A DNA stretch of 64,000 nt, from the NCBI GenBank assembly GCA_025594325.1, contig JANHCV010000010.1, positions 1,178,001-1,242,000 on the forward strand. Reading direction: 5' to 3'. Below the pieces are notes generated by a model. That model did no database searches. It had not been told where the DNA came from and saw nothing but the letters and a program-made list of their open reading frames with translations. This document shows positions 7,197-47,473 of this stretch, one piece after another. Source of the DNA: Blastocladiella emersonii ATCC 22665. Taxonomy: Eukaryota > Fungi > Blastocladiomycota. Both the position numbers and the translations under genes were made by a program. The number at the start of each line of letters is the position of its first letter. The stretch's first letter is position 1.

Positions 7197-8999
7197 TCAG
7201 TCCCAATCGGACCCATCCGATTCTCCATCACCACCGTCTTCTTCGTCAGAGCCGTCGTCTGAATTGGGCTCCGAGCCCGACTCGAGGCCGTCGTCCATTG
7301 ACGGAAAATGGACGCCAATGAGCGTGGTGGGTGCCGCATTGAGAATCGCTGCTTCGCCATCGTCAAGGGAGATGCAAGTCCCGTCAAGCAGAAGCTCCTC
7401 AAGGGCCGGTGGAAGGTGCTGAGCGAGGATTCGCGCGCCATCGTCCGTGATATCAATATTGCGTGACAGAATGAGCAAGCGCAGGGTCGTGGGCAGCGCA
7501 GGCGCGAGGAAGGCGACCGCTTCGTCCGTAACATCTGCATCCGCGAGTTCCAGCGACTCGAGGCGGGGCGGCATGCACTGCGCAAGTGCGCGGACCCCGC
7601 GGGTGCCCATAGGGCTCCCGCTAAGGTTCAAGTGGAGCAGCGTATGCGGCAGCCGCCGAAACATGCACGCGGCGACGTGCGGTGACAGATCCGCATCCAT
7701 GAGAATCAACTGCTCAAGCCCAGCAGGAAGGCTCCGCGAAATCGAGCTCAGTAGGGCCGGGGTGAAGCGATCGACGCCGTGCGTCAAGTCGAGAGTCCGA
7801 AGGGTCGCTGGAAGGGCAGCGAGCAAGTACTCGGCGGCGGAGTTCGGTTGAGGGTGATCCGTTATGCGAGCGGACTTGAGGTGCAGCTCCTCGAGGTGGG
7901 GCGGCATCGCGTCGGCCAAGGCGCGCGCACCGTCCGAGCAAAGGAAAGTGGAATTGAGGAAGAGCTTTTTCACCGTCGCGGGGAATGACCAGCGCACAAT
8001 AGATTTCGAGTCACGGTTACCGAGCTTGTTGCCAATCAGGGAGAGCGACTCGAGCGCGGGCGGGAAGTAAGGCCCCATCTCGGCAAGGCCCGCGGCCGTG
8101 AGCTCGTTCTCGTCGAGATTGAGTTCGGTGACTGAATGCGGGAGACTCTTGAGGATGGCAAGAACAAGATGGTCGCCGTACTTGTTGAGTTTGATTTTAA
8201 GCGACTTGAGACCACGCGGCAAACGTTCGAGGAGTCGGGTGCCAAAGTACGCGTCGTGCGAGTTGACCGAAAAGTCGAGCTGCTCAAGCTGGGGCGGCGA
8301 CTGCCAAGAGTCGATCCAGCGCCGGTCAGCGGTTTGGAGAATCCACGAGATGCGGAGGCTAAGCGAAGTCAGCGTCGAGGGGAAGCGGAAGCGAGCAAGC
8401 CGCTCGCAGTCGATCGTGCTACCATCCAGGTTAAGCGAGACGAGGGCCTGGCTGGGGCTCGCCATGGCGGCGTTGAGGGCGTCAATCCCCTTGAGAGTGA
8501 CGGGCTGGAAGCGCACTGCAAGCTCAGTCTGCGTACCGGCAGCGATCGCGCCAACGGATGATAAAATGTCCGAGTCGGCTGGGGTTTTCTCGTTATGGTC
8601 GAAAATGGATAAGCCCAGGGCATTAAGCACATGAGTGTGGACAGCGTGTATCATGAACCTAGAAACCGGAATGTCCGCATCGCGAATCCAATCGATCGTA
8701 CAAAGCGGAGAGCCATTGAGCGTATCGGGCGTGCACTCGATCGGGACACTCAGCGCACGGTATTTGCTCAAAAGCGCGACGTGGCCCGTCCGCATGGCCT
8801 TGTCGGCCGTGTGGTAGCTCGAGTGACGCAAGATGGCCTTGTGCACGCGCGGGATAAGGTTCGCGTGCGTGACGCCGGCGATCTGCTGGAATCCGTCGAG
8901 GTCGTCGCGGCTGAGCGACCACACGGCGAAGCATAAAACGCGTTCAATCAGCTCGGGTATGTTGAGCGTGACGGTCATGTCCGTTTTCATTCGTTTCAT
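7197..8999 (-). CDS. LRR-1: F-box-like/ankyrin-like/RNI-type LRR protein, subfamily A, intronless, acidic tail
   Basis: 600-aa ORF with N-terminal IPELIERVL, about 12 LPxxLxxLxLxxNxI repeats and a C-terminal D/E/S tract ending SDWD. Confidence 0.88.
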   Translation of the reverse strand: MKRMKTDMTVTLNIPELIERVLCFAVWSLSRDDLDGFQQIAGVTHANLIPRVHKAILRHSSYHTADKAMRTGHVALLSKYRALSVPIECTPDTLNGSPLCTIDWIRDADIPVSRFMIHAVHTHVLNALGLSIFDHNEKTPADSDILSSVGAIAAGTQTELAVRFQPVTLKGIDALNAAMASPSQALVSLNLDGSTIDCERLARFRFPSTLTSLSLRISWILQTADRRWIDSWQSPPQLEQLDFSVNSHDAYFGTRLLERLPRGLKSLKIKLNKYGDHLVLAILKSLPHSVTELNLDENELTAAGLAEMGPYFPPALESLSLIGNKLGNRDSKSIVRWSFPATVKKLFLNSTFLCSDGARALADAMPPHLEELHLKSARITDHPQPNSAAEYLLAALPATLRTLDLTHGVDRFTPALLSSISRSLPAGLEQLILMDADLSPHVAACMFRRLPHTLLHLNLSGSPMGTRGVRALAQCMPPRLESLELADADVTDEAVAFLAPALPTTLRLLILSRNIDITDDGARILAQHLPPALEELLLDGTCISLDDGEAAILNAAPTTLIGVHFPSMDDGLESGSEPNSDDGSDEEDGGDGESDGSDWD

Positions 9000-9125
9000 G
9001 TAGTCTGGTAGAGACTAAACCACCCACGAGTGAGGAGAGAGGAAGAGCGCCGCGCGGGCGAGCGAGAGCCGGATATGGGGTGGCGACACGGGCAGCCTCG
9101 CCTGCCACTTCTGTCAAGCCTTGCG

Positions 9126-9147
9126 ATCAGGTGAGTGGCGCGGCGCG
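9126..9147. promoter_or_regulatory. Conserved upstream motif of LRR-1 (ATCAGGTGAGTGGCGCGGCGCG)
   Basis: Near-identical copies at 11482-11503 and 20545-20566, at similar distances from the paralog ATGs, while surrounding sequence diverges. Confidence 0.6.
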
Positions 9148-9550
9148 CTGCAGCCTTTCGTCCCCGTTACTGATTTCTCTTCAGCTTCAAGGCTATTCCT
9201 CGTCACACTGTGAGGTGGTGATGTCGTCGTGGGAGTGCTGGTTGGTTCACATCGTTGCGCATCATTGTTTTCGCTGAGAGCTCGTCGCCATCACACCCTT
9301 TCTCTCTAATCCGCTGTACGAAAGCTGTTTTCATCCCGTCTCAGACTCATAGAAGAGATTAAAAGAAATTAGTTTTGTTCATTGACTGCCGTAGCACGCT
9401 CAGTCACATGCACATGTGATGCTGCCAACAATGCGGCGCCTGGCTCGCCCTTGAGCGTGAATCCAACGGGACTGTCTGTTCTCCAAGATGGGCGAGAGCG
9501 AACACGATACCTTTCAAAGAAAACTGTATAGTTTGTCAAACATTGGGCAC

Positions 9551-11352
9551 CTAGCGGCGCTTCATGCGTACCTGCAGGTCCGTGAGCGATGCGGGCGCCG
9601 CATCACGGATTGCGAGGGCGCCATCGGCTGGTGAGATGCTGGTGAAGTTCAGCAGGAGCGACTCGAGGGCTGGCGGCAAGTGTTCGGCAAGTGTATATGC
9701 GCCCTTGTCCGTAATGCCTTCGTTGTTCGTGAGATCAAGCGAGCGTAGCGTTGCAGGCAGGGCGGGCGCGAGGAGGGCAACTGCATCGTCCGTTAGCCGG
9801 GTGTACTCGAGATCCAGCGTTTCAAGATTGGGCGGCATGCACTGTGCAAGCACACGGAGCCCGTGCGCGCCGATCACGTTTCGCCTGAGTTGAAGGTAGC
9901 GCAATGTGCGCGGCAGTCGCCGAAACATGTAAGCTGCATCCTTTTCTTTCAGGCCTACGGCCGCGAGAGCGAGCCGCTCGAGATTTGGCGGAAGGTTGCG
10001 CGAGAGTAACGCCAAGCATGGAGGGCTGGTGCAGGGATGGATGCAATGTGACAAGTCGAGGTCGCGCAGCGTTGCTGGGAGGGCAGAAATCAAAATCGTG
10101 TCGCCTGGTGCCAAAGTCTTGACAGACCGCATGTGTAGCTTTTCGAGGCTGGGTGGCATTGCATCGGCCAGAGCTCGCATACCGCTGGACGCGAGGTTAA
10201 TGTCATTGAGGACAAGCTCCTTGAGAGTGGCAGGAAGCGCCCAACGAACCGCAGAAGATGAGTCATTGACCCCAAGCCAATTGCCAGTCATAGAGAGCGA
10301 TACAAGCGCGGGCGGGAGATGTAGACACATGTTGGCAAATCCCACGGACGTGATCCGGTTGCTGTCAAGCCCGAGTTCAACCACGGACGGCGGAAGGCTT
10401 TCGAGGATGAACTGGAGCAGTTGATCGCCATATTCGTTGCCGCCAATTTTGAGCGACTTGAGCCCGCGCGGAAGACGCTCAACAAGCCGAGCACCAAAGT
10501 AAGCGTCTTTTGGGTTGCTAGAAAAGTCGAGGTGCTCGAGGTGCGGCGGCCATTGCCAGCTATTGAGCCAACGCCGATCTTTGTCTGAGGAGATCCAGGT
10601 GCAGCTGAGGTTGAGCGTCGTCAACGTCGAGGGAAACCGGAAGTGCGAGAGTCGCTCGCAATCAATCGTGCTGCCGCTCAAGTCCAGCGAGACGAGGGCC
10701 TGGTTGGGGCTCGCCATGGCGGCGTACAGGGCCTCGATCCCCTTGACGGTGACGGGCTGGAAGCGCACTGCAAGCTCAGTCTGCGTGCCAGCAGCGATTG
10801 CGTCAACGGCCGCAAAGATGGCCGAGTCGGCGGAAATGTGTTCGAACGAATCCTATTTGCGGCGAACCAGAGGAGCTTAAGCCGTTACGGTCTGCTTTAG
10901 AGCTCGGGGTGTGGCTTCCGTACCTCGCAACGGCTGCGTTGATTGCCTTCCTCAACTTTGGTGAAGCCGAGAGCAGCCATTACTTTTTGACCAACGAGTT
11001 TGGCCGAGACATGATCGAGATCGATGTCCGAGTCCCGAATCCAATCGAGAGTGCGCAACGGCGAGGCAAGAAGCGTCTCGCTGGAGAACTGGATTGGGAT
11101 GTCGCAGCTGACGAACTTGTCCAGACTCGCAACATGGCCAGCAACCAAAGCTCTATGCATCCTGTAGCGACGGAAGCGGCGCAAGATGGCCTTGTGCACA
11201 CGCGGGATAAGGCGCGGGTGCGTGACGTTGGCGATCTGCCACAAGCCGTAGAAGTCATCCGAGTCGAGCGACCATACCGCGAAGCACAAGATACGCTCGA
11301 TGACCTCGGGTATGTCAAGTACGAGTTGCGTGGCGGTTTGCATTAGCTTCAT
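9551..11352 (-). CDS. LRR-2: subfamily A LRR protein, 2 exons (576 aa)
   Basis: Exon 1 is 11352-10924 (MKLMQT...SRCE), then a phase-0 intron 10923-10853 (GTACGG..ATAG), then exon 2 10852-9551 in frame. Clear paralog of LRR-1 and LRR-4. Confidence 0.88.
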
Positions 11353-11481
11353 GTACGAAGAATTCATCGCGCGGCATAGCAGAGGGGCGAGGGTTGCCGA
11401 GCGACGAGATCGAGGAGCGGTCACAGCGAAGCTCAACCAGCCACACCCGATCGACCTGTCACGCCTATCCAAGCATCTACA

Positions 11482-11503
11482 ATCACGTGAGTGGCGCAAC
11501 GCG
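11482..11503. promoter_or_regulatory. Conserved upstream motif of LRR-2 (ATCACGTGAGTGGCGCAACGCG)
   Basis: E-box CACGTG followed by TGGCGC and ACGCG, about 130 bp upstream of the ATG; matches 9126 and 20545. Confidence 0.6.
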
Positions 11504-11519
11504 TCCCCTCTACGACGGT

Positions 11520-12570
11520 ACACGTCGGGGTAGACGATCGTCTCAACCACCCATCGAGCGGTATCATGCTGTCGCGGTCCGGAACGAAATACGTGGTGTG
11601 TATCCACGACGTGACGCCCGGCAGTATTACGCTCGACAAGTCGTTTGAGACCGAGACCAAGATCAAGAAGATCAAGGACACGAAAGGGTGAGACCTGTAC
11701 CGCGTCGCGCGGCACGCGAATCCCGCGGCGCCTGGCGGGATCGACGTCACGCTGTGCGTGTCCATCAACAAGGCCGTGTGCCAGATTCTCAAGTGGGACC
11801 ACGGCGTGTTCATCAAGCTACAGGTACGCCGGCGCGGTCGCGCGCATCGAGGTGGGCAGAACTGACTCTCGCGTTGCGTCGCGTCGTGTAGGAAGTCTCC
11901 ATGGCCAGCCCGATCAAGATGCTCGACTGCATCAACATGACCAAGATCTTTGTCGCGCACGAGTTCCACTTCTCGCTCATCGACCTCGAGACCTCGACGC
12001 TCGATATCCTCAACAACCCTGTCGGCGCCGAGCGCACCGGGCCCGCCGTCCGCGCCGCCTCGTTTGGCGAGCGGCAGTACCTCTTGTGCTACCAGAGTAC
12101 GCGTTCTACCCATCGCTTCCGCCGCCCTCACTCACAAAAAACATCGCGCTCTAGACGTGGGCATCGTGCTCGAACACTCTGGCCCCGCGGCATCCGGCTC
12201 GCCCGCGTCGACACAGAGCCCGATCACGATGCGCCGGCGCCCGTTCCCGTGGCGGCAGCCCGTGCAGTTCGCGGACCGGCTCGGGCCCGACCACTTTGCC
12301 GCGTGCGGCGCCGGGCTCCTCGACGTCTACAACGTGCACACGGGCAAGATCGCGCACATCTTCGAGACGAAGCGCGACCGACTCCGCAGCCTCTCGCTCC
12401 TAACGTCGCGCGACACGGGACTGCCCGGATCAGGCGTCCTCGGCGGCAAGGTGTACCTGCTCAGCTTCGAGGAGAAGGAGGGCGGCGGTGGCGGCGAGCC
12501 CGGTGCGGGAGGGAGCGTCGCGGGGTCGTACTCGGTCCTGTGTATCTCGAACGAGGTGGTGCCTGCGTGA
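11520..12570 (+). pseudogene. 5'-truncated CNH (citron homology) domain gene fragment with an in-frame TGA
   Basis: The spliced reading IMLSRSGTKYVVCIHD...KIKDTKG*DLYRV...ILKWDHGVFIKLQ / EVSMASPIKML... / ...PFPWRQPVQ...LDVYNVHTGKIAHIF resembles a CNH domain. TGA at 11689-11691 sits where CNH domains typically have KGC. Two GTACGC..AG introns; no upstream exons are visible. Confidence 0.6.
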
Positions 12571-12751
12571 TGGGCGGCGCGCAAGGGAGGAGGGAGAGAG
12601 GGTGGAGGATACATGCAACTATTTTTCTTGAATCAGATGGCGTGCGCTTAAGTCCTCTGCTGTCATGGGGAGATGACCAAAGTCGGTTTCGAGGAAACAC
12701 TGGGAATGTACGAGATACAGTTACCAAATCCAGTTGATGTCAGGGAGTGTA

Positions 12752-14146
12752 CTAGTTGGCGCGGCAGTAGCCGAGCCCCGAGCCGTCGCTGTCGCTGCTG
12801 TCACCGGCATCCGAATTGTCACTGTCATCGCTGCCAGAGTCACTCGAATCGTCGCAGACTTGTTTCTCGCTAACGGGCAGACCCGTGCGAGCCCACCAGT
12901 TCAGACGCGCGTTGACCTTGGCCGGATCGTCGCCGGGTGCCACGCAGTCCCAAGCTGCTGGGCGAACAAAGTCGCCCTCGGGCAGCAACTCGCGGAACAG
13001 GGCGAGGGCGAGAACGTTGTTGGAAGCACTCGTGCGCTGGATCGCCCGTTCCCAGAACGTGAAGTTGACCTTGGGAATATCAACGGAGAATTCCATGTCG
13101 TTGTTTGATACATTTTGGCAGAACCAGGCTAGAACCTCCTTGTTGCTGGAAGCGGCCGCGTAATCGAGGACGTTGGACCAGAACGCGCGCATGATCTTGA
13201 TCATGGTGTCGTTGTCGTGGCCAATGAAATCGTCGCCCTCGCTGCAGCCGGGGCAGCACGGAGAGCAGTCCATGTACACGTCTTTCGTGATGGCCGTTTC
13301 GGGAAACGAGAGCGATCGACAGACGTCGTAAAAGTTCGGAGTCGAGTAGATCCAGTCGAGCACCTGGATGCGCTTGTTGTTGACCACGTCCTCCAGAATC
13401 AGACCCCAATCGTCAACGAATCTCGCCCAACTCTCGCGCAGGTAAATGTCGTAGTTATCGAGAAGCTCCATGTTCTCGGCCAGCATGGCGAGTGCGGGGA
13501 TGGTGTTGCGGACATCGTCCCATTGCTCGTCAACCTTATCGCAAAACCATTCGACAACCTTGCAATGATTGTGCTCAACGGCATCCTTCATGCAACGCCA
13601 AGTAAACTTGATTTCGAGGTCCGACTCGTCCGACCACCACTCGAGCACCTGGATGTGCCCGCGCGAGCAGGCCTCCTCCACGGTGTCTTCCGTGTACCGG
13701 CCGACGCGAGCGTGCGCCTTGAGCCACTTGAGAACGTCCGCCTGCCCGCACGCAGACGCAATATCGGTCGGGTACGGCTCGGGAAACTTGGCCCAGTCAA
13801 ATCCAACACACTTGTCCAGCAAGTCGAGACGCCCGGCGGAGCTGATCAGGCAAACGTAGAATCCAAGCTGAGCGGGGTCTGAGCAGGGGCGGCGGTGCTC
13901 GATCAAAGTGTCGCGGAGCGCTTTGTGCGACGGGTCGAGAGCACGTTGAACTCGAGGATGCAGAGAGTAGCGGAAAGTAGCGTGGCGGAGCCGACTGAGA
14001 CCAGGAAGGACGCGCAGGAGCGGGAGCGGGTCGGCGCCGCGCGGGTCGAGCTTGACCACACGAATGAGAGTTTCTTCGATGGCATCATAGGGCAAGAAGA
14101 CTCTCCGCCGCATTTGCATGGAGTCGCTGCATGGTATCTGCTTCAT
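12752..14146 (-). CDS. Ankyrin-like repeat protein with an acidic C-terminal tail and no LRRs
   Basis: Repeats such as DIASACGQADVLKWL, EEACSRGHIQVLEWW and KDAVEHNHCKVVEWF. N-terminal LPYDAIEETL..PLPLLRVLP segment and a DSD-rich tail. The start is assigned to MKQIP; the ORF is open to 14311. Confidence 0.75.
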   Translation of the reverse strand: MKQIPCSDSMQMRRRVFLPYDAIEETLIRVVKLDPRGADPLPLLRVLPGLSRLRHATFRYSLHPRVQRALDPSHKALRDTLIEHRRPCSDPAQLGFYVCLISSAGRLDLLDKCVGFDWAKFPEPYPTDIASACGQADVLKWLKAHARVGRYTEDTVEEACSRGHIQVLEWWSDESDLEIKFTWRCMKDAVEHNHCKVVEWFCDKVDEQWDDVRNTIPALAMLAENMELLDNYDIYLRESWARFVDDWGLILEDVVNNKRIQVLDWIYSTPNFYDVCRSLSFPETAITKDVYMDCSPCCPGCSEGDDFIGHDNDTMIKIMRAFWSNVLDYAAASSNKEVLAWFCQNVSNNDMEFSVDIPKVNFTFWERAIQRTSASNNVLALALFRELLPEGDFVRPAAWDCVAPGDDPAKVNARLNWWARTGLPVSEKQVCDDSSDSGSDDSDNSDAGDSSDSDGSGLGYCRAN

Positions 14147-14509
14147 GGTCGGGTGTGCGAGCGGTGGCGGGAGCGAGATCAAGGGGCGGGGAGCGCCGAG
14201 CGAAAAGGTCCGCTCGCGATAAACAGCTTCCGGCCGATCACATGATTGTTCGGCGCGTCTCGCAGCACCAACGTTGCGTTGATTTGCCGTCACACAGCCT
14301 TCGGCTGGCACCGGCGCAGGGCTTTGCCCGTTCGCCCTTGCCCAGCCTCGCGCCGCGCACGCTCTCGCACTCCCAGCCTAAATCGTACAACGCGCCCACC
14401 TCCCGACATGCAAGCGAACGCTTACTGACCCTGCTCTTAGCGCCAACGAGCACGCTGAAGCTCAGGTTGCGCGTGATGGCGAGGTTGATGAAGTGTTGCT
14501 GTTGGCAGC

Positions 14510-15495
14510 CAGCGTTGCCTTGTTGGATTGATCATCCGCGTCGCTGTGTTGAGTTGGTGACCAGCGTTGCATTGTTGAGTTTGTGATCAGCGTCGCCTAG
14601 TTGCGTTGATGGCCAGCGTCGCCTTGTCGAGTTGATGAACAGCGTCGCCTTGTCGCCTCAACGACCAGCGTCGCCTCGTTGCGTGCGATGACCAGCGTCG
14701 TCTTGTTACGTTGATTCAGCGCCTCCTTATTGAATCGAAGATCAGCGTCGCCTCGTTGCGTTGATCAACAGTGTTGCCTTGTTGCGTTGATTATCAGCGT
14801 CGACTTGTCGAATTGATGCCAGCGTCGCCTTGTCGAGTTGATGGCCAGTGTCGCCTTGTCGAGTTGATGGCCAGCGTCGCCTTGTCGAGTTGGTGATCAG
14901 CGTTGCCTTGTTGTGCTGGCGACCAGCGTCGCCTTGTTGTGCTGGCGACCAGCGTCGCCTTGTTGGGTCGTGAACAGCGTCGCCTCGTTAAGTTGATGTT
15001 CAGCGTCGCCTCGTTGCGTTGATGACCAGCGTCGCATTGTTGCGCTAACAATCAGCGTCGCCCTGTTGCGTTGATAATTAGCGTGGCCTTGTTGAGTTGA
15101 TGTTCAGCGTCGTCTTGTTAAGTTAACGATCAGAGCCGCCTTGTCGAGTTGGTCACCACAGCCGCCTTGTTGGGTCGGGAACAGCGTCGCCTCATGAAGT
15201 TGATGTTCAGCGTCGCCTCATTGCGCTAGCAATCAGCGTCACCCTGTTGCGTTGATGATCAGCGTGGCCTTATTGAGTTGATGATCAGCGTGGCCTTATT
15301 GAGTTGATGTTCAGCGTCGTCGTGTTAAGTTGACGATCAGAGCCGCCTTGTCGAGTTGGTCACCAGAGCCGCCTTGTCAAGTTGGTCACCAGCGTCGCCT
15401 CGTTGTGTTGATGACCAGCGTCGCCTCGTTGTTTTGATGACCAGCGTTGTTCCGTTGTGCCGAAGATCAGCGTCGCCTTGTTGAGCTCATGATCA
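14510..15495. repeat. Minisatellite of about 26-bp units (CAGCGTCGCCTTGTTG(C/A)GTTGATGA(T/C)), roughly 38 copies, with higher-order structure
   Basis: Core CAGCGTCGCC recurs every 24-27 bp. A block of about 8 variant monomers starting at 14965 recurs at 15172 (about 207-bp period). Confidence 0.9.
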
Positions 15496-16313
15496 TGGAC
15501 TAGGACGACACGCCAGGAGGAACGTAATGAACGTCGTTCACGTTTGCCGCGTGGTTAGTCTGCGTCAGCCAAGTAAGGCAACTGCTGTAGGTAGCAGGAA
15601 CGTCATGGCGGATCCGTTTTGTCCACTCTCACATCATAGCAGCAACGTTTCTGCCGCGCTACTACCAGATACAATATGTCGTGCTACTCAGCAGCTCCGT
15701 GATCGAGTGGAAGATCATATGTCGCGACCCATCTTCGCCGCGCGACGCCATCGTTCTCCAGGCGATTGTTGCTACGTATCATGTCGTGCAGCACGACAAT
15801 AAAGTAATCAAGAATGATTTATATTTCACAGTAACAGCAGCTCCATTTTGCTTCTCATTTGCAGACAGGAACGCGCAAGCCATGGTGCGGTCGCAGACGC
15901 GATGTGGGGGCGACTGAAGCCGGACGGCAGTCAGTGAATGAAATGACACTTGCATAACGTGTAGTAGCAACAGAAAGCATATTTGTGGTGGGTTCACCTT
16001 CCGCACAGAACCGCAAGAGAGGAAGTGTTAGCGCGACCACGCGTTCAGCCACTCACGTAACGTGACAGAAGTGACGAGTCTCCATATGTCACGTGACACA
16101 GACCGAGACTTTCGAAGGGCCACCCAATATTTCAGGGCAAAGCCCTGCACTCCGCCTCGTTGAGTGCTCGAGCACTCACGACCCAACACACGAAACTGGA
16201 TGTGGCATGAGGAATCCGCTGGGCTCCTCCGACACGTCCAAGCGATCAAAACAGCCTGTAATCATACAAAGAAATGAACAAAACGCGAACTCGCAACCAT
16301 TTCGTCAAGTGCC

Positions 16314-18080
16314 TCAGAGTCGATACGTTGTCAGACTCGGCGGAGCAGCGGCTTCGAACGCGGCCTTGCCACTTTCGCTGAGCTTGTTGTCAAAAAGTGT
16401 CAGGAACTCGAGGCGAGGCGGGATGTGCGCAGCAAGCAGCTTTGCGCCAATATCGGTGATGCCGTTCATGTCGAGCTGCAGGGTGAGGAGCGTCGCAGGG
16501 AGAGCAGGCACAAGCTTGGTGAGAGCAGCATCATCGAGGTGCGCCATGCGAAGGTGGAGAGCCTCGAGCTGCGGAGGCATGTGCTTCGCAAGTAGCGCCG
16601 ATCCGGCTAGACCAAGCTCGGCTCCGGAAAGGTTGAGCTGGCGCAGCGTGTGGGGCAGCCGCGGTATGAGTTCCGTGCTACTCGAGGCAGACAAGTTGCT
16701 CAAGTAGAGATCGAGCGTGCTCAGCTGAGCGGGAAGCGCATCGATGAGCGCATGGGCGACTATGTCGTCAAGCTCGACGCGGCAGAGCTCCAGCTCGGTG
16801 ATGGATGGAGGCAGCGACGCAAGAAGGCGCGGCAGCTGGGCAAGGTCGATATGGCTGTGGCCGAGGCCGAGCACTTTGAGGTTTGGTGGGAATGAATCCG
16901 CGAGTGCACGAGCTTCCTCGGCGCCAAACGTGTTGTACTCGGCACTGATTTCGGTCAGTGACACCGGGAAGCTCCAACAAAGCGGCTTGTCTGATTCGTT
17001 GAGCCCGGTATTGCTCAGGTTCAGCGTGAGGAGCGAGGCAGGAAGCATGGGACCGAGAACCGCAAGCCCGATCCCCGAAAAATCATTGTAGCGGAGGTCG
17101 AGCGACGTGAGGCAAGGGGGGAAAAGGAGCGCGAGTGATTCGGCAGCGTCGTCGTCAATTCCGCAGCCCGTGAGCGACAGCGAGGTGAGACTGGGCGGAA
17201 GGCGGGCGAGCACAAGTTCCAGAGCCTCCGAGAAGTCGCTCGAGCTCAGCGTGAGCGACTCGAGTCGCGAGGGCCACGGCATGGGCACAAGTTCGCGAGC
17301 CAAACTGTTGCTCCCGAGCCAGTGTCCATCGAAAGTGGCGGACACGACCGACTCGGGCAGTCGCAGTGCAAGGAGGCGGGGCAGATCGAGCGTACAGCCA
17401 GTGAAGGACACTGAGCGCAAATTTTGGGAGGACGAGGCCATGGCGGCGTTGAGCGTTGCGATACCAGCGGGCGAGATGGCTTCGTTGGTCAGCTCGAGCT
17501 CGGTCAAGTGTCCTTCGGCAACATCAGCTCGCACTGACTCGATGCCTACATCCACAACGGGCGGGGTCGAGTGGCCCTGTGTTCGCGCGCATTCGCAAGT
17601 CGGTTAAGTTCGCCGAGCTTCGTAATACTGAGATGACGAAACACGTACAATCAAGTCGTCGCCGTCGTAAATACTCTCGCCAAGACCGAGCGCGAGGCGG
17701 GCATCGGCCTCAATCTCGTAATCATCGGCCCAGGTCCCGACTTCGTGCAGGGCGAGGGCCCCGGAGTCACGCCACCACTCGAGAGACAACAAGTGACCAC
17801 CGTCAATGGCCTCGTTCAAGGCATCCGTCGAGCACTGAAGCGGCAGGCCAAGCTCGGTCCACTTGTCGAGCACACGGACGTTTCCATTCGCAGTGGCCTC
17901 GTCAAGCGAGAGGACAGGGGAGCGAGAGAGGATCGCTCGCGTTACGCCCGGGGCAAGCTCGTGTCGCGCGACGCGGGCGTACTGCAACAGCCCCGCAACG
18001 TCGTCCGGGTCGGGGTGCAAGTTGATTGCGTGGACAAGGATCCGGTCAAGAATTCGAGGAGCATAAAGCGCAGAGAACAT
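16314..18080 (-). CDS. LRR-3: subfamily B LRR protein, 2 exons (564 aa)
   Basis: Exon 1 is 18080-17649 (MFSALYAPRILDRIL...SLDEATANGNVRVLDKW...LEWWRDSG), then phase-0 intron 17648-17577, then exon 2 17576-16314 with about 12 LRRs. Confidence 0.87.
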
Positions 18081-18613
18081 GTTGCATCAAGTTTCCATCG
18101 GGATTGCATAAACTGCACCGTGCACGGGGAGAGATGAGCCGAACGACGGCGGCGGGTCGACTCAGAGGGGCAAAAAGCTGGTCGATCAGCCACACGTGAT
18201 ATCGCGTCGTGTCCTTCCTCGCTCGTGTCGCTCCCGGGCCAAGGCGACGCCAGTAAAGCAGCGTATAACATGACGTCCTCGATGAGGATGACGTAAACGC
18301 GTCTAGGACAGAACGTTGGCGCCCAATGCGAACACATCTCGCCTTCCAATGTAGCTCGTTGCCACGCGAGCAGACGCCTCGCGGATCATCCTGACGCTCA
18401 TGGTTAGTGAGGGAACAAATAATCCAATACACTTCAGCGTAACAAAGCGGTCGTGCGACCTGCACATGCGAGGGATCATTCCCAGTCTGGCGAGCTCGAC
18501 TGGTCGGAAACGGCATCCTCCTCGTCGTCATCGTCATCGTCATCCTCGATCCCGCCGTGTTCGTAATCAATGAAACCATCGTCAAAATCAGCGTCAGAAT
18601 CGGACGAGTCGTC

Positions 18614-20404
18614 CTACGTCACCGGGAACTGCAATTCGGTGAGCGTGGCGGGGGCCGCGTCGCGGAGTGCAGCCTCACCACTCCCGTTCGTGATGCGGGT
18701 ATCGATGAGCAGCAGCTTCTCGAGAGCCGGCGGCAAGTGCTGGGCAAGCACACGCGCGCCGTCGTCCGTGATCTCAAAGGTGCCCGAAAGATCGAGCGAG
18801 CGAAGTGTCGACGGGAGCACGGGTGCAAGAAGGGCGACCGCGTCGTCCGAGGCATTGGTGCGCTCGAGGTCCAGCTTCTCTAGGCTGGGCGGCATGCACT
18901 GCGCAAGGACACGGAAGCCGTGCGCGCCAAGGTCGTTGCCGCGGATGATGAGGTCACGAAGCGTGCGCGGGAGGCGCCGAAACATGTAGGCGGCAATCTT
19001 GGGAGTGAGCCCAGCACTCATAAGTTCCAGCCGCTCGAGCCCAGCGGGAAGGCTGCGCGCGAGCAAGTACAGGATTGATGCCGACCGAGAATCAAGGTTC
19101 GATGACAGATCGAGGCTCCGTAGCGTGGCTGGGAGCGCGGTGAGCAGGTGTTTGGCGCCCGGCTCCGAAATGTTGGCGGACTTGACGTGTAGCGTCTCGA
19201 GATTGGGCGGCATCGCGTCAGCCAAAGCGCGTGCGCCGATCGTGTAAAGGTCAGTGCCGCTGAAAATGAGAGTCTTGACGGTCGCGGGGAACGACCAGCG
19301 GACGGTGGAGGTGGCATTCTCGTTACAGAGCTTATTGCTGCACATAGAGATCGACTCGAGTGCAACTGGGAGATGCGGGCACATGTCTGCGAAACCCGTG
19401 GCCGTAATATCGTTCCCGGTGAAATCAAGGTCGATCACGCATGGCGGAAGGCGCTTGAGAATGGCCAGGACGAGGTGGTCGCCGTAGCGGTTATCCATGA
19501 GCTTGAGTGCCTTGAGCCCGCACGGGAGGCGCTCGAGGAGACGAGTAGCAAAGTACGCATCGTGCCGGTTGTACGAAAAATCAAGGCGCTCGAGCTGCGA
19601 CGGCCACTGCCACGAGTCGATCCAGCGCCGGTCTGCGGTTTCGAGAATCCACGAATGGCTGAGGTTGAGCGAGGTAAGCGTCGAGGGGAAGCGGAAGTGG
19701 GAGAGGCGCTCGCAGTCGATGGTGCTGCCCTTTAGATTGAGCGAGGTAAGGGCCTGGTCGGGACTCGTCACGGCGACATTGAGAGCGTTGATCCCATTGA
19801 TAGTGATGGGCTGGAAGCAGAGTTTGAGCTCGGTCTGCGTGCCAGCCGCGATCGCATCGACAGCTGCAAAGATGACCGAGTCGGTGGGAATCCGCTCAAA
19901 GGAATCCTATTCAGAGCGAGCCGCCAACGCGTGAGACAGTCCACCCGGGAGGGGTTAGTACAGAGGGACACGTACCTCCCAGCGGTCGCGCAGGTGATTG
20001 TACTTGGACTTGGGGAAGCCAAGCGTCCCGCGCACGCGGTGGAGAAAATCATCCGTCCTGACCTTGGGAAGCGCAAGGCCCGAGTTACGAAGCCAGTCAA
20101 GGGTGCGCAGAGGCGAGGCACGGAGAGTATCGCTCAAGAAGTTGAGGGAAATGCCCAGCGCAAGGTACTTGTCCAGGAGCGCGGCGTGGCCGTTTCGCAT
20201 GGCCTTGTCGGCCGTGTGGTAGCTCGAGTGACGCAAGATGGCCTTGTGCACGCGCGGGATAAGGTTCGCGTGCGTGACGCCGGCAATCTGCTGGAAGCCG
20301 TCGAGATCGTCGCGGCTGAGCGACCACACGGCGAAACATAAAACGCGTTCAATCAGCTCGGGTATGTTGAGCGTGACGGTCATGTCCGTTTGCATCAGCT
20401 TCAT
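18614..20404 (-). CDS. LRR-4: subfamily A LRR protein, 2 exons (573 aa); the stop precedes an in-frame acidic tail
   Basis: Exon 1 is 20404-19976, intron 19975-19907 (GTACGT..ACTAAC..ATAG), exon 2 19906-18614. Confidence 0.87.
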
Positions 20405-20544
20405 AAAGTGTACAAGCGATCGAATCGCCACGAGGGAGAGAAGGGAGAAGGCAGCGGGCAAGCGACCGAGCGAGCGGCGCAGGAACCGCCCTGAGCGGGG
20501 ACTCACACCGCCGCCATCCTGTCACGCCTGTCAAGCCACTTCAG

Positions 20545-20566
20545 ATCAGGTGAATGGCGCAACGCG
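20545..20566. promoter_or_regulatory. Conserved upstream motif of LRR-4 (ATCAGGTGAATGGCGCAACGCG)
   Basis: Matches 9126 and 11482; about 140 bp upstream of the ATG. Confidence 0.6.
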
Positions 20567-29600: not shown

Positions 29601-31562
29601 CGAGGAGATGGTCAAGCTCGGGCTCAAGTCGCCGAGCTTGTTTGGGTACGATCTTCGCGCGCTAGTACACCATCTCGAGCCGCCGACTCACAGCCGCGCG
29701 CGTGCGCGCGAGTGTAGCCGGTTCTGCCCAGTCACGCTGGCCGAGACCAGGTTCATGGGCGCGCACTGCGAGGGCTCACTGCCGTACATGCTGCACGACC
29801 ACATTTACTGGCTCAAGACGAAGCGCAAGCTGCAGGTCCGGTCACCATCCACAACGCTCTCGGCGACCGCCACTCACACCTTGTACGGATCATGTAGAAG
29901 TTCAAGACGACGCCGAGCGAGTACACGACAAGCCCGCACCTCGGCGCGTACACGCCGCTGCGCATTCTAGTCACGGGCGGCCCGCTCTCGGGCAAGTCAA
30001 CCCTGGCGAGCGAGCTGTCGGCGGCGCTCGGCCTACCTATCGTCCAGTTCGGCACCCTGCTCGAACAGCTCTTGGCCACGTACGGCGACGCGAGCGCACC
30101 AGGCACCCCGCCGCTTGCGCTCGTGCAGTCGATCCGGGCGCGGCTGCACCATGGTGGCGCTATGGGCGGGGCCGAGACCTCGACGCTGCTGCGCGACGTG
30201 ATCCAGCGGCGCCTCGTCCTCGGGTGCATTCTCGACGACGTGCCACCCGCGGCCATGCCGCCGGACCTGGTCCTGGCGTGCGAGCTCAACCTGCCGCGGA
30301 CGCTGGCGCGCGTTAAGGCCGCGCCGCTGCCGTTCCCGGACATTGTGCGGGCGGGCCACGAGCACTTTGCCGCGCACGTCGACGCCGCGGTCCTCGCGCC
30401 GTGGACGCGCGAGGTCGACTGCGTCGACCGGCTGCCGGCAGAGCAGTCCAAGTGGTACGTCAAGTCGGTCGCGCTGGCGGCAGTCCACGCGGCGGCGATG
30501 CGCGCCAGCGCGCTCGTCGTCGGCCGTGTCGCGGGCGTGCCCGTCCCGGTGTACCGCGCGGGGCTCAACAAGCTGACGACGCCGCTCGGCCCTGCGCGCG
30601 AGTACTGCCCCGTGTCGCTCGCGTCGCCGACGCGCCAGTTCGACGTGTGCCCCGCGACGTGGGAGCACGCAGTGTGGTACCGCGGCAAGGTGTACCAGAC
30701 ATGCAGCGCGGGGCACGCGCGGGCGTTTGTTGCGGACCCCAACCGGTTCGCGAGCGTCGCGTACCCGGATGACGCGCCCGTGCACATTGCGCCCGAGCTC
30801 GTGCGGCAGGCATTCCCGAAAAAGTTTGAGTTCCTCGGGTACTGCCCCGTGCGCCTGCTGCGCGACCGCGGGCACGTCGACGGCGTCATGGAGTGTGCGG
30901 TCCAGTACGGCGGGAAGCTGTACGCCATGGCGGACGAGGCGGCGATGCACGAGTTCATGCGGTACGTCGTCGAGTTCGCGCCGATGCTGGTCCAGTACTG
31001 ACACGTCGATTGCATAGGACCCCGGACCCGTTCGTGCACCAGAAGCTGCTCAAGAAGCTCCCGCCACGCGTGGCGCCGGTCCCGCTGGCGTCGCTGCCGG
31101 CCAACGTGTTCCTCGAGAAGACCATGCAGAAGACCATCACGGCCGCACTCGACCGCGTCGGCACAGTCCGGCCCAAGTTCCCGTTTATGTCCATGACTGC
31201 GTCGGCGCTGCTCTACATTGCGCTCACGCTCAAGGGTACGTTTAACGACGGTAGATCACGGAAGCGCAGCCTAACCATGGTTTCCGTACGTAGCCCAAAA
31301 TCCGAGCTTCCGCGACCACGTCCGCCGCAAGTGGCAGCAGCAGCTCGACCAGGCGTCGCAAAAGGCCGAGCTGGTCCAGTTCCTGGCCAAGGAGATGCAG
31401 CCGACAGCGGCTCCAGCGACAAGCGGCACCAGCAAGGTCATGACCAAGCGCGACAGCGGCAGCTACCTGGAGCCGCGCAAGCGGCACCCGGAACTTGACA
31501 ACAAGCTGGCCACCTTTTTCGAGCATCAGCGGGGGGTTGGGATTGGGCGGACGGCAGTTTGA
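26638..31562 (+). CDS. AK9: Adenylate kinase 9-like multidomain protein (multi-exon, flagellar-type)
   Basis: Four P-loops (GPPKSGKS, GAPGCGKT, GPQGTGK, GGPLSGKS) and several YHS-like [YF]CPV units. AK9-type C-terminus RPKFPFMSMTASALLYIALTLKA. Many short introns; stop TGA at 31560-31562. Individual exon boundaries are only partly resolved. Confidence 0.85.
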
Positions 31563-34129
31563 CGAGGAACTGAAACACATTGTATTTGTCACCTTGCCCA
31601 TGACGCGCCTGGATTGCTTCGTGGCGCAACGCGTCATTGGCGAGCTGAGCTAAGAAGAACGGAGCAAGGTACGGTACACACGAGAAATGATAGAGCGTTG
31701 CATCGACATTGCAAGCAATCGTCAGGATCAAATAACCTCAAAGACTTCGAAATGTCCCTTCGTGCAGCGCCGATGAAGCTCGACTAACGCGCTGCCAAGT
31801 TCATCAGCCCTGAACCTGAACTTCAGCAATCCCTCGCGCGGAAGCCCAAGGTTGAGAAGGAGCATGAAACCAACGTTGCTAAAGTCGTTGCGGTCGAGAG
31901 AGACCGTGTAGATTGTTCGTGGCAGACGAGAAAAGAAAAGCCCGGCCGTCTTGTCCGTCAGTGAACAGTCAGAGAACTGGATCGCGGTGAGCGAAGCCGG
32001 AGCAACCTCGAGCAGAGTCTTGACACAATCGTCATCGACGCAAGTTGCCGAAATATCAATGCGCTCGATCGACGGGCCGACCAACATGGGAAGAAGCCGT
32101 TGAACATTCGAGCTCGAGTCGAACGGAAATGCGTTCAAATCCAACTCTTTGAGGGCCGGAAAGGCATGTGGTACCGGACGTTCCGCAGCGACTTCCAACA
32201 TGGACAAGTCAATGGCAGGGGCATTGAAAAAGCGATTCGCTCCGCCGAATCGAAGCCGCTTGAGCGACGGACGCACGCGATTGGCCAGGGCAATCAAGGC
32301 GAGCTCGTTTACATCCAAGAATTCGAGATCAAGTTCCTCCACCGAGTCAGGGAGGCATTGACAAAGTACTTGGATGCCATGGACGCCGATGTCGGAATTA
32401 TTGCTGAGGTGCAAGGTCACCAAGCCTTGGGGCAGTCGTTCGCCTAGCGCCATTGCTCCGTCCGAAGCAATCGAGTTCTCTTTCAAATCAAGGTACGTGA
32501 GACTTAGCGGTAGGGCACGCGAAAGTTCAAAAACAGCACGATCATCCAAGTCGCAACTGGAGAGTGTCAACCATGTGAGGGCGGGAGGAAGGCCGCGGGC
32601 AAGGTGCGTGACGCACTCAGCATTGAGTGCGCAATGGTCGAGGTACAGCATGGTCAAACTGCACGGCAGATGGCCAAGGTTGGGAGCAAAGTGTGGCAAA
32701 GTCAAGTCCTCGTTGAATAGGCCAAGCGCGTTGAGCTGCGCAGGCAGCCTGAGTGCTGCGTCTGGCGGGCAGTTGTAGGCAATACGGTTGCCCTGCAGAT
32801 GAAGTGAACCGAGCGATGACGGGAGCTTGAGCGCACTGAGCCGGGTGAAGTTGAGATCGACTTTGAGGAAATTGATAGAACGGACACTCGAGGAAGCAGG
32901 ATCGTTGTTAAACTCGGTGATGGCCTTGGAGGAGATACGTCGGTTTGCGATCCAAATAGGTTTCCCTGAGCGCTTGAGAATATTCAAAAGCTTTGCGTCG
33001 CCAGCCGCGACCTTGGCGCCTGTTACTGCCCCAGCGCGAGCATACTCGCGAAACTGGCGGGCCTCGTCCAAGTTGCCGTCACGCTCTGCGTCATTGGCTG
33101 CTACTTCCCAGTCGTCTTGAATGGTTTGCGGGACGCCCAGTAGCACAGCAGCCCACATTGGAAGCTCGCTGTATGTAAGCGGCAATCCAGAGTCACGCCA
33201 AAACTCCAAGACTTCGTAGCAACGATGTTGAACAGCGAGATCCAGAGCAGCCTCAGTGCACTCGATGGCAAGACCGTGAGCTACTCGGTAGCGAAGGAGA
33301 TCCGATTTCCTGTTTGCGCTGGCATTGTGAACTGAGAAGGCCAAAACTCGCTGCCGCACAGCGCTGTGGACGCTGGGGAGGTGAGCGCGGGGAGCGACCC
33401 GCAAGTATGGCAAAACTGAGGCGAGATCGAAGCCCGCCTCGTCGCGGTTGTGAAGCTGGATGGCCGCAACGAGAATCTGGTCAAGAAGCTCCGGTGGCAG
33501 CATAGGTTTGTGTTGATGATCCACAGAGTTGCGAGGGTGTCCAACAATATCAATGCAATAAGCTATTCATTCGCCAACATCGAGTGGCAGGGCGTAGAGG
33601 GAAGCAGAGGGAGAAAAGCGGCTCAACGCGCTTGTCGCCCGAGCCAGCCGAGGCTGTTCGTCCGATCCTGTGACGGCACAGAAACACGTGTATCCTGGAC
33701 GTTTCGTAGGTCTACACTCACTAGCCGCCACACCAGCTGACCCTGTATTTACGACCTGCCGTGTGTTTCCTGGACGCTGGCTTGCGGCGCTGCCTGTCAC
33801 GCAAATCAACAGCTGCTCCGCCAGCCTTTCACCCCTTCGCCGCGCGCACGGCGGTCCTTGGCGACCACGACGACCACGGCGGCGCTGCTGCGAAGGAACG
33901 CTAGCACTCACACCCGTGGAAAATAAATACTCGCTACTCGATGCATCGTCCGCTGCTGCAGTCCCTCGTCCCGCCCGCTGAGCGTTGAGCGCCCAGACGG
34001 CCGAACGCCCCCGCCGCAACGCTCGCTGCCCGCTGACCGTGCCCCTCGCACGCTGGCTGGCTCGTCCAACGTCGCGCTTGGCGCGTTGAGGTCGACGCCC
34101 GTCGTGTGCCGCCGCCGACGCCGCCCGTC
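30514..34129. repeat. Left arm of a 3616-bp inverted duplication (AK9 3' end, LRR-6 and upstream region)
   Basis: Reverse complement of 38492-47403 once the 5291-bp LTR element and 5-bp TSD are removed (8912-5296=3616). ORF translations of the two arms are identical where compared. Confidence 0.95.
31728..33524 (-). CDS. LRR-6: subfamily C LRR protein, intronless (598 aa)
   Basis: MLPPELLDQIL N-terminus, ankyrin-like RYRVAHGL..VLEFWRDSGLPL segment and about 11 LRRs. Confidence 0.88.
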   Translation of the reverse strand: MDHQHKPMLPPELLDQILVAAIQLHNRDEAGFDLASVLPYLRVAPRAHLPSVHSAVRQRVLAFSVHNASANRKSDLLRYRVAHGLAIECTEAALDLAVQHRCYEVLEFWRDSGLPLTYSELPMWAAVLLGVPQTIQDDWEVAANDAERDGNLDEARQFREYARAGAVTGAKVAAGDAKLLNILKRSGKPIWIANRRISSKAITEFNNDPASSSVRSINFLKVDLNFTRLSALKLPSSLGSLHLQGNRIAYNCPPDAALRLPAQLNALGLFNEDLTLPHFAPNLGHLPCSLTMLYLDHCALNAECVTHLARGLPPALTWLTLSSCDLDDRAVFELSRALPLSLTYLDLKENSIASDGAMALGERLPQGLVTLHLSNNSDIGVHGIQVLCQCLPDSVEELDLEFLDVNELALIALANRVRPSLKRLRFGGANRFFNAPAIDLSMLEVAAERPVPHAFPALKELDLNAFPFDSSSNVQRLLPMLVGPSIERIDISATCVDDDCVKTLLEVAPASLTAIQFSDCSLTDKTAGLFFSRLPRTIYTVSLDRNDFSNVGFMLLLNLGLPREGLLKFRFRADELGSALVELHRRCTKGHFEVFEVI

Positions 34130-37100: not shown

Positions 37101-39849
37101 GGTGTGGCGCTCAGCCACTTCGAACCAACCAAGCACGAAGCGCCACGGCCCACCTCGCTCGACTCGCGCTCCCTTGATGCTCAACCGCCGGCTTGCCATG
37201 TATTACGACGAGTCGATGAAACTATTCAGTGTCGGGCCCAGGCTATCGATCCCGACGGCGCTTTGTGCGCTCAGTGTCCCTGCGGTCCCGGCAACGCTGG
37301 CGCTGTGTGGGCGGCACGACCATCGCCCGACCCCGCTCGGATCGTGGCGTGCGATCCCATCTCAACGGGGCCGTCCGACCCGATGGACAGCTCGAGCGTA
37401 GACACGATGTGTCCACGTTGCTATTTTATGGCGTCCCCGGCGGTTCACGGATCAAGCTCGGCCACTGGCGTAAAGGCGCGCGTCGTGCATACCCTTGACC
37501 TCGAGCAGTTCGCCAAGACCGTCGAGACGGTCCGCTCCAAGCGGGGCTGCTTGTCGTCCGAGACCAACGGCTCGGCCAACGCTTCCAGTGAGGTCAGCAT
37601 CGTGTCGGTGAGGTGGTCGTCGGCCATCAACGCGCAGGCGCAGACTTGGCGCAGGATCACAAGACCCGCTTCCCGACATGGTGGCGGCACGCTCCGAGGC
37701 AAGTATCGGCGTGGTCAACTTTGACGAGGGACGAGGGCACGAGCCCGTTGTTGAGGTCCTCCGCGGGTGCGGGTACTCGACGACCAAAACTGCGTCGGTC
37801 ACGAGCAGAAGCACTTCACCGCACCACGTCCAGCAGTTGTTGAGGCGTTGCTACTTTATTCAATGGTGTCGCTCCGCTCGTTCACGGAGAGAACAGCGAT
37901 CATAGACGAGCTCAATACAAAGGTTCTCGACTCGTGATCGTCCTCAAAGTTGCGTTGAAGTCGGTTCAGCGACTTGAAGCGGAAGAGTTACCCGCGGAAC
38001 ACACGACTTGTCGTCGGCCTTCGCGCCGAAGGACGGAAGCTGTGTTCATCGTCTAGCCCACGACGAGCAGGACTTGCTACCTCGCAGCGAACAGCTATAC
38101 TCTCTGCCTCCCACAAACGGTTTATGAGTCGGCCGTGGGCGGCATGGACGGCGGAGATTGCGAGCGCGCTCCAAGTCCTGGTCGCGATCATGGCCATGGT
38201 CGTTTCCAGCCCAGCCAACCTCACGGGCGGGTTCGCACCACGACGGACACGAACAAGAGGTGCTGTGCAAGCAACCAGCGCGCGAGCTCCGGCGGCGAGC
38301 GGCAAGTACAGCCCTCAGACACGCTGCGGAAGTCAAAGCTCGCTGTCGCACAACGAAGAGATCGAAAGAGCAGCCGTGCGACATACTGACCCCCGTCGGC
38401 CAAGTTTGTAGCCAGCCGGCTATTCAGCGGGCGATGTGAGCGAGCACCCGCCGTTGTCACGGCGCAGCGGGCGGCGGCCGAGCGGTGGCGAGACGGGCGG
38501 CGTCGGCGGCGGCACACGACGGGCGTCGACCTCAACGCGCCAAGCGCGACGTTGGACGAGCCAGCCAGCGTGCGAGGGGCACGGTCAGCGGGCAGCGAGC
38601 GTTGCGGCGGGGGCGTTCGGCCGTCTGGGCGCTCAACGCTCAGCGGGCGGGACGAGGGACTGCAGCAGCGGACGATGCATCGAGTAGCGAGTATTTATTT
38701 TCCACGGGTGTGAGTGCTAGCGTTCCTTCGCAGCAGCGCCGCCGTGGTCGTCGTGGTCGCCAAGGACCGCCGTGCGCGCGGCGAAGGGGTGAAAGGCTGG
38801 CGGAGCAGCTGTTGATTTGCGTGACAGGCAGCGCCGCAAGCCAGCGTCCAGGAAACACACGGCAGGTCGTAAATACAGGGTCAGCTGGTGTGGCGGCTAG
38901 TGAGTGTAGACCTACGAAACGTCCAGGATACACGTGTTTCTGTGCCGTCACAGGATCGGACGAACAGCCTCGGCTGGCTCGGGCGACAAGCGCGTTGAGC
39001 CGCTTTTCTCCCTCTGCTTCCCTCTACGCCCTGCCACTCGATGTTGGCGAATGAATAGCTTATTGCATTGATATTGTTGGACACCCTCGCAACTCTGTGG
39101 ATCATCAACACAAACCTATGCTGCCACCGGAGCTTCTTGACCAGATTCTCGTTGCGGCCATCCAGCTTCACAACCGCGACGAGGCGGGCTTCGATCTCGC
39201 CTCAGTTTTGCCATACTTGCGGGTCGCTCCCCGCGCTCACCTCCCCAGCGTCCACAGCGCTGTGCGGCAGCGAGTTTTGGCCTTCTCAGTTCACAATGCC
39301 AGCGCAAACAGGAAATCGGATCTCCTTCGCTACCGAGTAGCTCACGGTCTTGCCATCGAGTGCACTGAGGCTGCTCTGGATCTCGCTGTTCAACATCGTT
39401 GCTACGAAGTCTTGGAGTTTTGGCGTGACTCTGGATTGCCGCTTACATACAGCGAGCTTCCAATGTGGGCTGCTGTGCTACTGGGCGTCCCGCAAACCAT
39501 TCAAGACGACTGGGAAGTAGCAGCCAATGACGCAGAGCGTGACGGCAACTTGGACGAGGCCCGCCAGTTTCGCGAGTATGCTCGCGCTGGGGCAGTAACA
39601 GGCGCCAAGGTCGCGGCTGGCGACGCAAAGCTTTTGAATATTCTCAAGCGCTCAGGGAAACCTATTTGGATCGCAAACCGACGTATCTCCTCCAAGGCCA
39701 TCACCGAGTTTAACAACGATCCTGCTTCCTCGAGTGTCCGTTCTATCAATTTCCTCAAAGTCGATCTCAACTTCACCCGGCTCAGTGCGCTCAAGCTCCC
39801 GTCATCGCTCGGTTCACTTCATCTGCAGGGCAACCGTATTGCCTACAAC

Positions 39850-40023
39850 TGTCACGGTTCAGTGATCCGACGGCTCGGGCTGGTGGCGCGGGCTGGTGGC
39901 GCAGTCCCTCATAAGCCGAGCGTTGCCCTCGCTCTCCCTCTCTCTTGTCATTCGTGATACAATCCTTCATTATCCGGCTAGTCATTCCTCGTGGCACAAG
40001 ACCCTCCCCCTCGGCACCTTACA
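39850..40023 (+). repeat. 5' LTR (174 bp)
   Basis: TGTCACGG...CCTTACA, identical to 44967-45140. Confidence 0.97.
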
Positions 40024-40025
40024 CT

Positions 40026-47403: not shown

Positions 47404-47404
47404 C

Positions 47405-47473
47405 GTGGTGGCTAGTGAGTGTAGACCTACGAAACGTCCAGGATACACGTGTTTCTGTGCCGTCACAGGATCG
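47405..47473. repeat. Third copy of a 69-bp segment at the duplication junction
   Basis: Direct repeat of 38890-38958 (1 mismatch) and inverted repeat of 33663-33731. Confidence 0.9.

Follow-up and report, generated by a model that had tools for sequence, protein, structure and literature searches.

The 64,000-nucleotide window analysed here (contig JANHCV010000010.1 of the fungus Blastocladiella emersonii ATCC 22665, positions 1,178,001 to 1,242,000 of the forward strand) contains a cluster of genes for leucine-rich repeat (LRR) proteins. Three of these, LRR-1, LRR-2 and LRR-4, are intact tandem paralogs whose proteins are 57-63% identical. A preliminary description of this DNA had proposed that the exposed positions of the LRR strand motif xxLxLxx are hypervariable in the three genes and are subject to diversifying selection, as in plant resistance (R) proteins. 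The variability is concentrated beyond chance, yet it is moderate rather than “hyper”. LRR paralogs of diverged specificity ordinarily show such a pattern, and it does not amount to demonstrated diversifying selection. The three genes are probably old, functional paralogs with a weakly constrained, diverged predicted binding face. As a worked example, they illustrate that variable x positions in LxxLxLxx are by themselves no evidence of positive selection.

LRR-1 is a single-exon open reading frame of 600 amino acids (7197..8999, minus strand) that comprises F-box-like helices, two ankyrin-like repeats, 15 LRRs and an acidic tail. Its LRR domain, in which variability by repeat register was measured, spans residues 183-571 (7287..8453, minus strand) and consists of 15 repeats of ~26 amino acids. 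LRR-2 (9551..11352, minus strand) has exons at 10924..11352 and 9551..10852, separated by a 71-nt GT..AG intron (10853..10923), and encodes an intact protein of 576 amino acids. LRR-4 (18614..20404, minus strand) has exons at 19976..20404 and 18614..19906, with a 69-nt GT..AG intron (19907..19975) placed as in LRR-2. It corresponds to GenBank H9P43_007862 (P0001) of B. emersonii ATCC 22665, which maps to 20383..18617 with its parts one intron apart. All three proteins match Pfam LRR_6 (LRR-1, E=1.7e-12; LRR-2, E=1.4e-23; LRR-4, E=1.9e-18), and a Pfam search of all copies returned only LRR families, with no NB-ARC or NACHT domain.

The AlphaFold2 model of LRR-1 (predicted local distance difference test score, pLDDT, 83.8; predicted template modelling score, pTM, 0.78) has 15 short strands (E188..E564) recurring every ~26 residues, the 3-residue strands alternating with helices of 8-11 residues. 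In Foldseek searches its best match was ribonuclease inhibitor (RNI) 1a4y (E=3.2e-15), the template modelling (TM) score by target reached 0.67 for 4per, and further matches included the LRR domain of RipG4, COI1, FBXL2/17 and the LRR domains of NLRP proteins. The protein belongs with RNI-like LRR proteins on the strength of its tandem repeats matching the LRR_6 profile (15 delineated) and its modelled horseshoe, with a concave parallel sheet and convex helices. The 26-residue register reads P1 x x L4 x x L7 x L9 x x N12 x L14, followed by the helix. Since the modelled strands lie at register 6-8, positions 6, 8 and 10 should face the concave sheet, while 11 and 13 should fall in the adjoining ascending loop. 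This placement bears out the earlier suggestion that the variable positions lie on the concave face, with 11 and 13 beside it.

Sequence comparison of the three paralogs confirmed the pattern that had drawn attention to them. The framework strings quoted in the preliminary description (RFPSTLT, RLxERLPxGLK, VRWxxPAT, RALADAMPPxLE and xMFRRLP) are all present at homologous places in repeats 2-7, as are all six quoted triplets of variable strings from LRR-1, LRR-2 and LRR-4. Across 14 repeats of the trio, register 11 (0.14), 13 (0.19) and 6 (0.21) have the lowest mean pairwise identity, which rises through register 10 (0.36) and 8 (0.57) to 0.83 at register 5; helix-side registers range over 0.40-0.86. 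The concave class was defined a priori as the x positions of xxLxLxx, that is, register 5, 6, 8, 10 and 11. Identity in this class is 0.41, compared with 0.57 at other non-core positions (Mann-Whitney p=0.003) and 0.59 at helix-side non-core positions (p=0.001), and three different residues occur in 25/70 concave columns vs 37/187 others (Fisher p=0.013). The proposed concentration at xxLxLxx is thus real, but it does not extend to the whole strand: register 5 is conserved, and variability is greatest at the strand's C-terminal end and along the ascending loop (10, 11 and 13, plus 6). Among 15 family members the concave positions are again the least conserved (0.16 vs 0.22, p=0.005), a weaker tendency than in the trio. 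Distant members (LRR-3 and P0004, ~30% identity) were used at the amino-acid level only and were left out of the codon analysis because their synonymous sites are saturated.

Selection was assessed with a custom-written Goldman-Yang F3x4 likelihood in which the synonymous scale is common to all partitions. It was applied to the trio and to five genes, the latter comprising the trio plus the family members P0002 and P0003 with their exons recovered. By the Nei-Gojobori method (NG86), synonymous divergence (dS) among the trio is 0.85-1.28, and the branches estimated by maximum likelihood (ML) amount to 1.5-3 neutral substitutions per codon. The ratio of nonsynonymous to synonymous rates (omega) for whole genes is 0.27-0.32 by NG86, at a dS of 0.85-1.17, and 0.22/0.18 by ML. 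By class, NG86 omega is 0.30-0.70 for the a priori concave positions, 0.11-0.19 for the core and 0.18-0.23 for the helix side; NG86 and per-register ML values together place the core at 0.01-0.19. In the ML analysis of the trio, omega is 0.43 in the concave class and 0.18 over the remaining LRR-domain positions, and this partition outperforms a single omega (twice the log-likelihood difference, 2dlnL, 36.6). An omega of 1 is rejected for the concave class both in the trio (2dlnL 37.3, p=1e-9) and in the five genes, where the class value is 0.35 (p=5e-23). When data were simulated on the fitted tree with its fitted branch lengths and kappa kept fixed, true omega values of 1, 1.5, 2 and 3 were recovered without bias at such class sizes. 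A free-ratio fit placed no branch above 1 for the concave class, and the comparison of M1a with M2a was not significant (2dlnL 0.6 for the trio and 0.4 for the five genes). These data provide no support for the proposal that the concave positions are under diversifying selection.

A finer partition does not alter this result. Per-register omega peaks at 10, 11 and 13, at 0.59-1.04 in the trio and 0.50-0.59 in the five genes; the individual values for register 11 and 13 are 0.95 and 1.04, respectively, in the trio, and 0.59 and 0.50 in the five genes. Register 6 lies at 0.51 in the trio and 0.31 in the five genes, and helix-side positions at 0.05-0.45. When the four best positions (6, 10, 11 and 13) are chosen post hoc, NG86 omega is 0.87-1.17, and ML omega is 0.74 in the trio (p=0.047 vs 1) and 0.47 in the five genes, such that even these positions are at most neutral. 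The preliminary description had set, as the outcome that would refute diversifying selection, a concave omega of 1 or less that was also no higher than at other surface residues. Omega is indeed not above 1, but on every terminal branch of the trio the concave value is 2-4 times the helix-side value. Because the two halves of this expectation split, the idea of selection is weakened, not refuted.

Gene conversion was considered as a source of both the conserved framework and misleading selection signals. The 5' tract of LRR-1 (8751..8990, minus strand), which lies outside the LRR domain, is 93.75% identical over 240 bp to 20156..20395 of LRR-4, compared with ~75% elsewhere in self-BLAST, and the first ~70 residues of the two proteins are identical. 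As judged from the sequence, this is probably a gene-conversion tract. Contigs assembled from the source reads show the paralog's bases (G>A) at 8880 and 8931. Synonymous divergence within the LRR domain is uniformly high, with a proportion of synonymous differences (pS) of 0.57-0.61, and core codons have a pS of 0.50-0.60. Given that core synonymous sites have diverged like the rest, it is selection that maintains the framework, and not gene conversion of recent date. Repeated conversion that homogenises the framework, with the variable positions escaping it or diversifying anew, would be consistent with the 5' tract, but these LRR-domain values show no recent homogenising of the framework, and this explanation is very improbable.

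In the favoured explanation, LRR-1, LRR-2 and LRR-4 would be old tandem duplicates (dS about 0.9-1.3) of a family known to date from B. emersonii only, each encoding a presumably intracellular protein of ~560-600 amino acids with a three-helix N-terminal module, two ankyrin-like repeats and a horseshoe of 15 repeats. Purifying selection keeps all three genes (overall omega 0.2-0.3), and the hydrophobic core, together with the helix and loop framework that builds the horseshoe, is under the tightest constraint. Constraint is weakest, with omega from ~0.3 to roughly neutral, on the outward-pointing side chains of the concave sheet and the neighbouring ascending loop (register 6, 8, 10, 11 and 13), which would explain why those positions changed most between copies. 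The horseshoe may bind a protein partner through its concave face, and the paralogs may have come to suit different partners by drift or by adaptation; the N-terminal module may couple the bound partner to common machinery, most likely an SCF-type (Skp1-cullin-F-box) ubiquitin ligase.

Several observations weigh against this explanation. M8 outperformed M7 in the trio (2dlnL 7.1, p=0.03) and in the five genes (9.3, p=0.009), and outperformed M8a by 3.0 and 6.7, respectively, a marginal signal that in the five-gene fit corresponds to ~4% of sites at an omega of ~8. Synonymous sites are near saturation, so omega estimates are model-dependent, and positive selection in an ancient burst would leave no visible trace. 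Moreover, the public sequencing runs that contain the stretch are of DNA from the source sample only, with no RNA and no other isolate. The first two of these observations leave room for arms-race selection on the concave face and ascending loop, acting episodically or at few sites per repeat and masked by long branches and saturation, which is a serious but rather unlikely alternative. It is consistent with the raised concave omega on every terminal branch of the trio, with the near-neutral values at register 11 and 13 and at the post hoc positions, with the advantage of M8 over M8a in the five genes, and with a large family that occurs in one species and lies among transposons. However, omega in the a priori class falls significantly short of 1, and the simulations show that values at or above 1 would be visible if they were sustained. 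The site models suggested in the preliminary description (M7/M8) yielded their marginal signal with no site above a posterior of 0.95 in either the trio or the five genes. Twelve sites exceeded 0.5 in the five genes, and 10 of these lie outside xxLxLxx (three at register 13, five in the pre-helix loop or helix and two in the N-terminal domain), leaving two within it. The M8 test gives false positives under gene conversion and saturation; given the saturation and the probable conversion tract described above, its signal is best considered weak and non-specific.

A less diverged gene pair is similarly informative. The tandem neighbour of P0002 (H9P43_009421) on another contig (L001:7869-9687) is 75% identical to it, with a dS of 0.5. 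In this pair the replacements are 0.33 at concave positions and 0.33 on the helix side, and omega is 0.41 vs 0.39; hence, there is no concave excess of the kind that an arms race would predict. While these data favour weak constraint over diversifying selection, the control is weakened by the possible pseudogene status of one partner: the neighbour has a frameshift near L001:9010-9016, where ~seven codons of one repeat's helix are missing, and it is either a pseudogene or the product of an assembly error, although the GenBank model still has 546 amino acids. The same frameshift is among the observations that would fit a further alternative, in which the genes are redundant, decaying copies and the variable positions reflect neutral drift. 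Also consistent with decay are the lack of GenBank annotation for LRR-2 and LRR-3, the absence of RNA among the public runs, the roughly neutral rate at the most variable positions, and the disruption of a more distant LRR copy in the window by a Ty3/gypsy element. Nonetheless, the trio and LRR-3 keep full-length frames and canonical introns after a dS of ~1, and neutral decay cannot yield an overall omega of 0.2-0.3 with a core omega of 0.01-0.19 on every branch. Decay is therefore improbable, and the interpretation of old paralogs kept by purifying selection, with a weakly constrained binding face, is preferred.

The most likely identity of the N-terminal module is a degenerate F-box, although this is unproven. 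The N-terminal 170 residues of LRR-1 fold confidently (pLDDT 87.7) as a helical module followed by an ankyrin pair. Residues 8-64 form three helices (14-28, 34-41 and 50-59 in the AlphaFold2 model of the N-terminal part) and carry the family motif L-x-x-P-x-L-I-E-R-I-L. Of the top 50 VIA rows, almost every one matches residues 64-135 with a pair of ankyrin repeats (Z 5-6.5), with a root-mean-square deviation of 2.4-3.3 over 66-73 residues. The nearest neighbours of residues 8-64 by language-model features are all F-box clusters, at 0.87, which is a lead only, and the corresponding segment of an Allomyces relative is an F-box both by features (0.90) and by structure (TM 0.64-0.74). The module is also found in the ankyrin-repeat gene at 12752..14146, as judged by an hhalign comparison with the N-terminal family profile (probability 95%, E=3.8e-8). 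F-boxes occur combined with differing repeat types, and the fusion of the module to a second repeat type fits an adaptor module.

The profile searches argue against an F-box. The Pfam F-box families (PF00646 and PF12937) gave no match in 20 N-terminal domains, even at E up to 10, and the full-length proteins, the Allomyces relatives among them, contained no Pfam F-box at E up to 1. Two PDB profile searches were negative, an hhalign comparison of the module with the Allomyces F-box segment was not significant (E=0.2), and a second family member had no F-box among its language-model neighbours. In addition, a Foldseek search of the PDB with the N-terminal model gave no match at E <=0.001, the Legionella AnkB-Skp1 match (E=2.1) being not significant; a shape search of the Atlas with the same model returned generic helical repeats only; and ten LRR hits from outside the family contained no F-box that could be used to seed a profile.

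A full-database profile search revealed many full-length relatives of the LRR proteins. All 19 family-type hits whose source was looked up (19/19), together with four named relatives, are from B. emersonii ATCC 22665. The family comprises at least 24 clusters at 50% identity, scattered over many contigs, all of B. emersonii. The only relatives of similar architecture from outside this species are two Allomyces proteins (E=4e-7 and 8e-5). The B. emersonii genome paper does not mention the LRR family. The proteins represent an undescribed family, so far seen in B. emersonii only, whose common N-terminal module may be a cryptic F-box. One further B. emersonii protein, P0008 (KAI9156014.1, 817 amino acids), is named “fatty acid synthase alpha subunit Lsd1” and matches the family profile over residues 40-528 (E=8e-194); this looks like either a misannotation or a fusion in the gene model.

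The most far-reaching interpretation is that the family is a Blastocladiella-specific, transposon-associated expansion of SCF-type substrate adaptors, with a degenerate F-box, an ankyrin pair and LRRs, and that changing targets, such as proteins of viruses, parasites or mobile elements, impose episodic diversifying selection on their recognition surface, chiefly on the ascending-loop positions 10, 11 and 13. This combination is considered unlikely. If it is true, this early-diverging zoosporic fungus would possess a recognition repertoire resembling innate immunity. Nothing comparable to plant R genes or to the variable lymphocyte receptors (VLRs) of lampreys is known in zoosporic fungi.

The remaining genes of the cluster also lie on the minus strand. 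LRR-3 (16314..18080) is a divergent, intact paralog of 564 amino acids, ~34% identical to LRR-4, with a putative intron of 72 nt (17577..17648). The ankyrin-repeat relative (12752..14146; Pfam Ank_4) has the N-terminal module of the LRR family, with ankyrin-like repeats replacing the LRRs, and ends in a serine/aspartate-rich acidic tail resembling that of LRR-1. Between it and LRR-3 lies a tandem-repeat tract (14510-15495) whose shifted self-matches are ~75-77% identical. In the GenBank annotation of the contig, LRR-4 and the start of LRR-1 are annotated and there is no gene call for LRR-2 or LRR-3, which means that two intact family members are absent from it; a gene model for a CNH fragment overlaps the start of LRR-2.

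The window as a whole is eukaryotic, with intron-split P-type ATPases, a Ty3/gypsy chromovirus polyprotein, a Harbinger DDE transposase and a carnitine acyltransferase; a search for tRNAs across the 64 kb found none. The LRR cluster lies within a block of 56-61% guanine-plus-cytosine (GC) content with flanks of 68-73%. Considered together with the transposons, the low-GC block (6000-26000 and 32000-40000) has 56-62% GC, and the flanking housekeeping genes (ATPases and carnitine acyltransferase) have 68-73%. A bacterial effector similar to Ralstonia GALA, suggested by the combination of high GC content and LRRs, was ruled out by the spliceosomal introns, the chromovirus, the Harbinger transposase, the carnitine acyltransferase and the B. 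emersonii match. An inverted segmental duplication in the window (30504..34129 vs 38492..39851 plus 45141..47412) carries a more distant LRR gene, one copy of which is split by a Ty3/gypsy chromovirus of ~5.3 kb (39852-45140; polyprotein open reading frame 41106-44966). This duplication was the sole candidate for a recent in-window pair that could serve as an unsaturated comparison, and it is uninformative for selection because its copies are 99.9-100% identical.

These genes can be compared with several known systems. They share with RNI-type LRR proteins the 26-29-residue repeat, the LxxLxLxxN strand followed by a helix, and the horseshoe (TM by target 0.55-0.67). Identity to those proteins is only 17-22%, however; the B. 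emersonii proteins add an N-terminal helical and ankyrin-like module and, in LRR-1, an acidic tail, and no ribonuclease partner is implied for them. A parallel in architecture is with the F-box/LRR substrate receptors of SCF ligases (FBXL2, FBXL17, Skp2 and COI1/TIR1, with the bacterial mimics GALA/RipG4), in which a small N-terminal helical module precedes an RNI/CC-type LRR horseshoe, and the Allomyces relatives carry an F-box at the corresponding place. One difference is that the B. emersonii proteins lack an F-box detectable by profiles, and another is the presence of two ankyrin-like repeats between the module and the LRRs.

In the LRRs of plant nucleotide-binding LRR (NLR)/R proteins and in lamprey VLRs, diversifying selection acts on xxLxLxx. 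As in those receptors, conservation in the B. emersonii proteins is lowest at the solvent-exposed x residues, both on the strand and in the ascending loop, and omega there is several times that of the rest of the domain in the trio, though not in the P0002 pair. Unlike in those receptors, omega is not above 1 for the concave class or for any branch, there is no NB-ARC or NACHT domain, and the genes show neither a signal peptide-type architecture nor evidence of somatic assembly. Expansion within a single lineage is reportedly a feature of ubiquitin-ligase adaptors (Thomas 2006). The present family differs from the expanded adaptor families of plants and nematodes in that many close copies were available there to show either “genomic drift” or positive selection acting on the substrate-binding domain, whereas the B. 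emersonii copies are too few and too far diverged for that, and whether they belong to the F-box class is unproven. Such adaptor families are known to have undergone lineage-specific expansion in both plants and nematodes (PMC3030570, PMC12951971), and the B. emersonii family resembles them as a large family in one species, with tandem and dispersed copies and with pseudogenes and transposons nearby, that combines a conserved adaptor end with a variable end for substrate binding.

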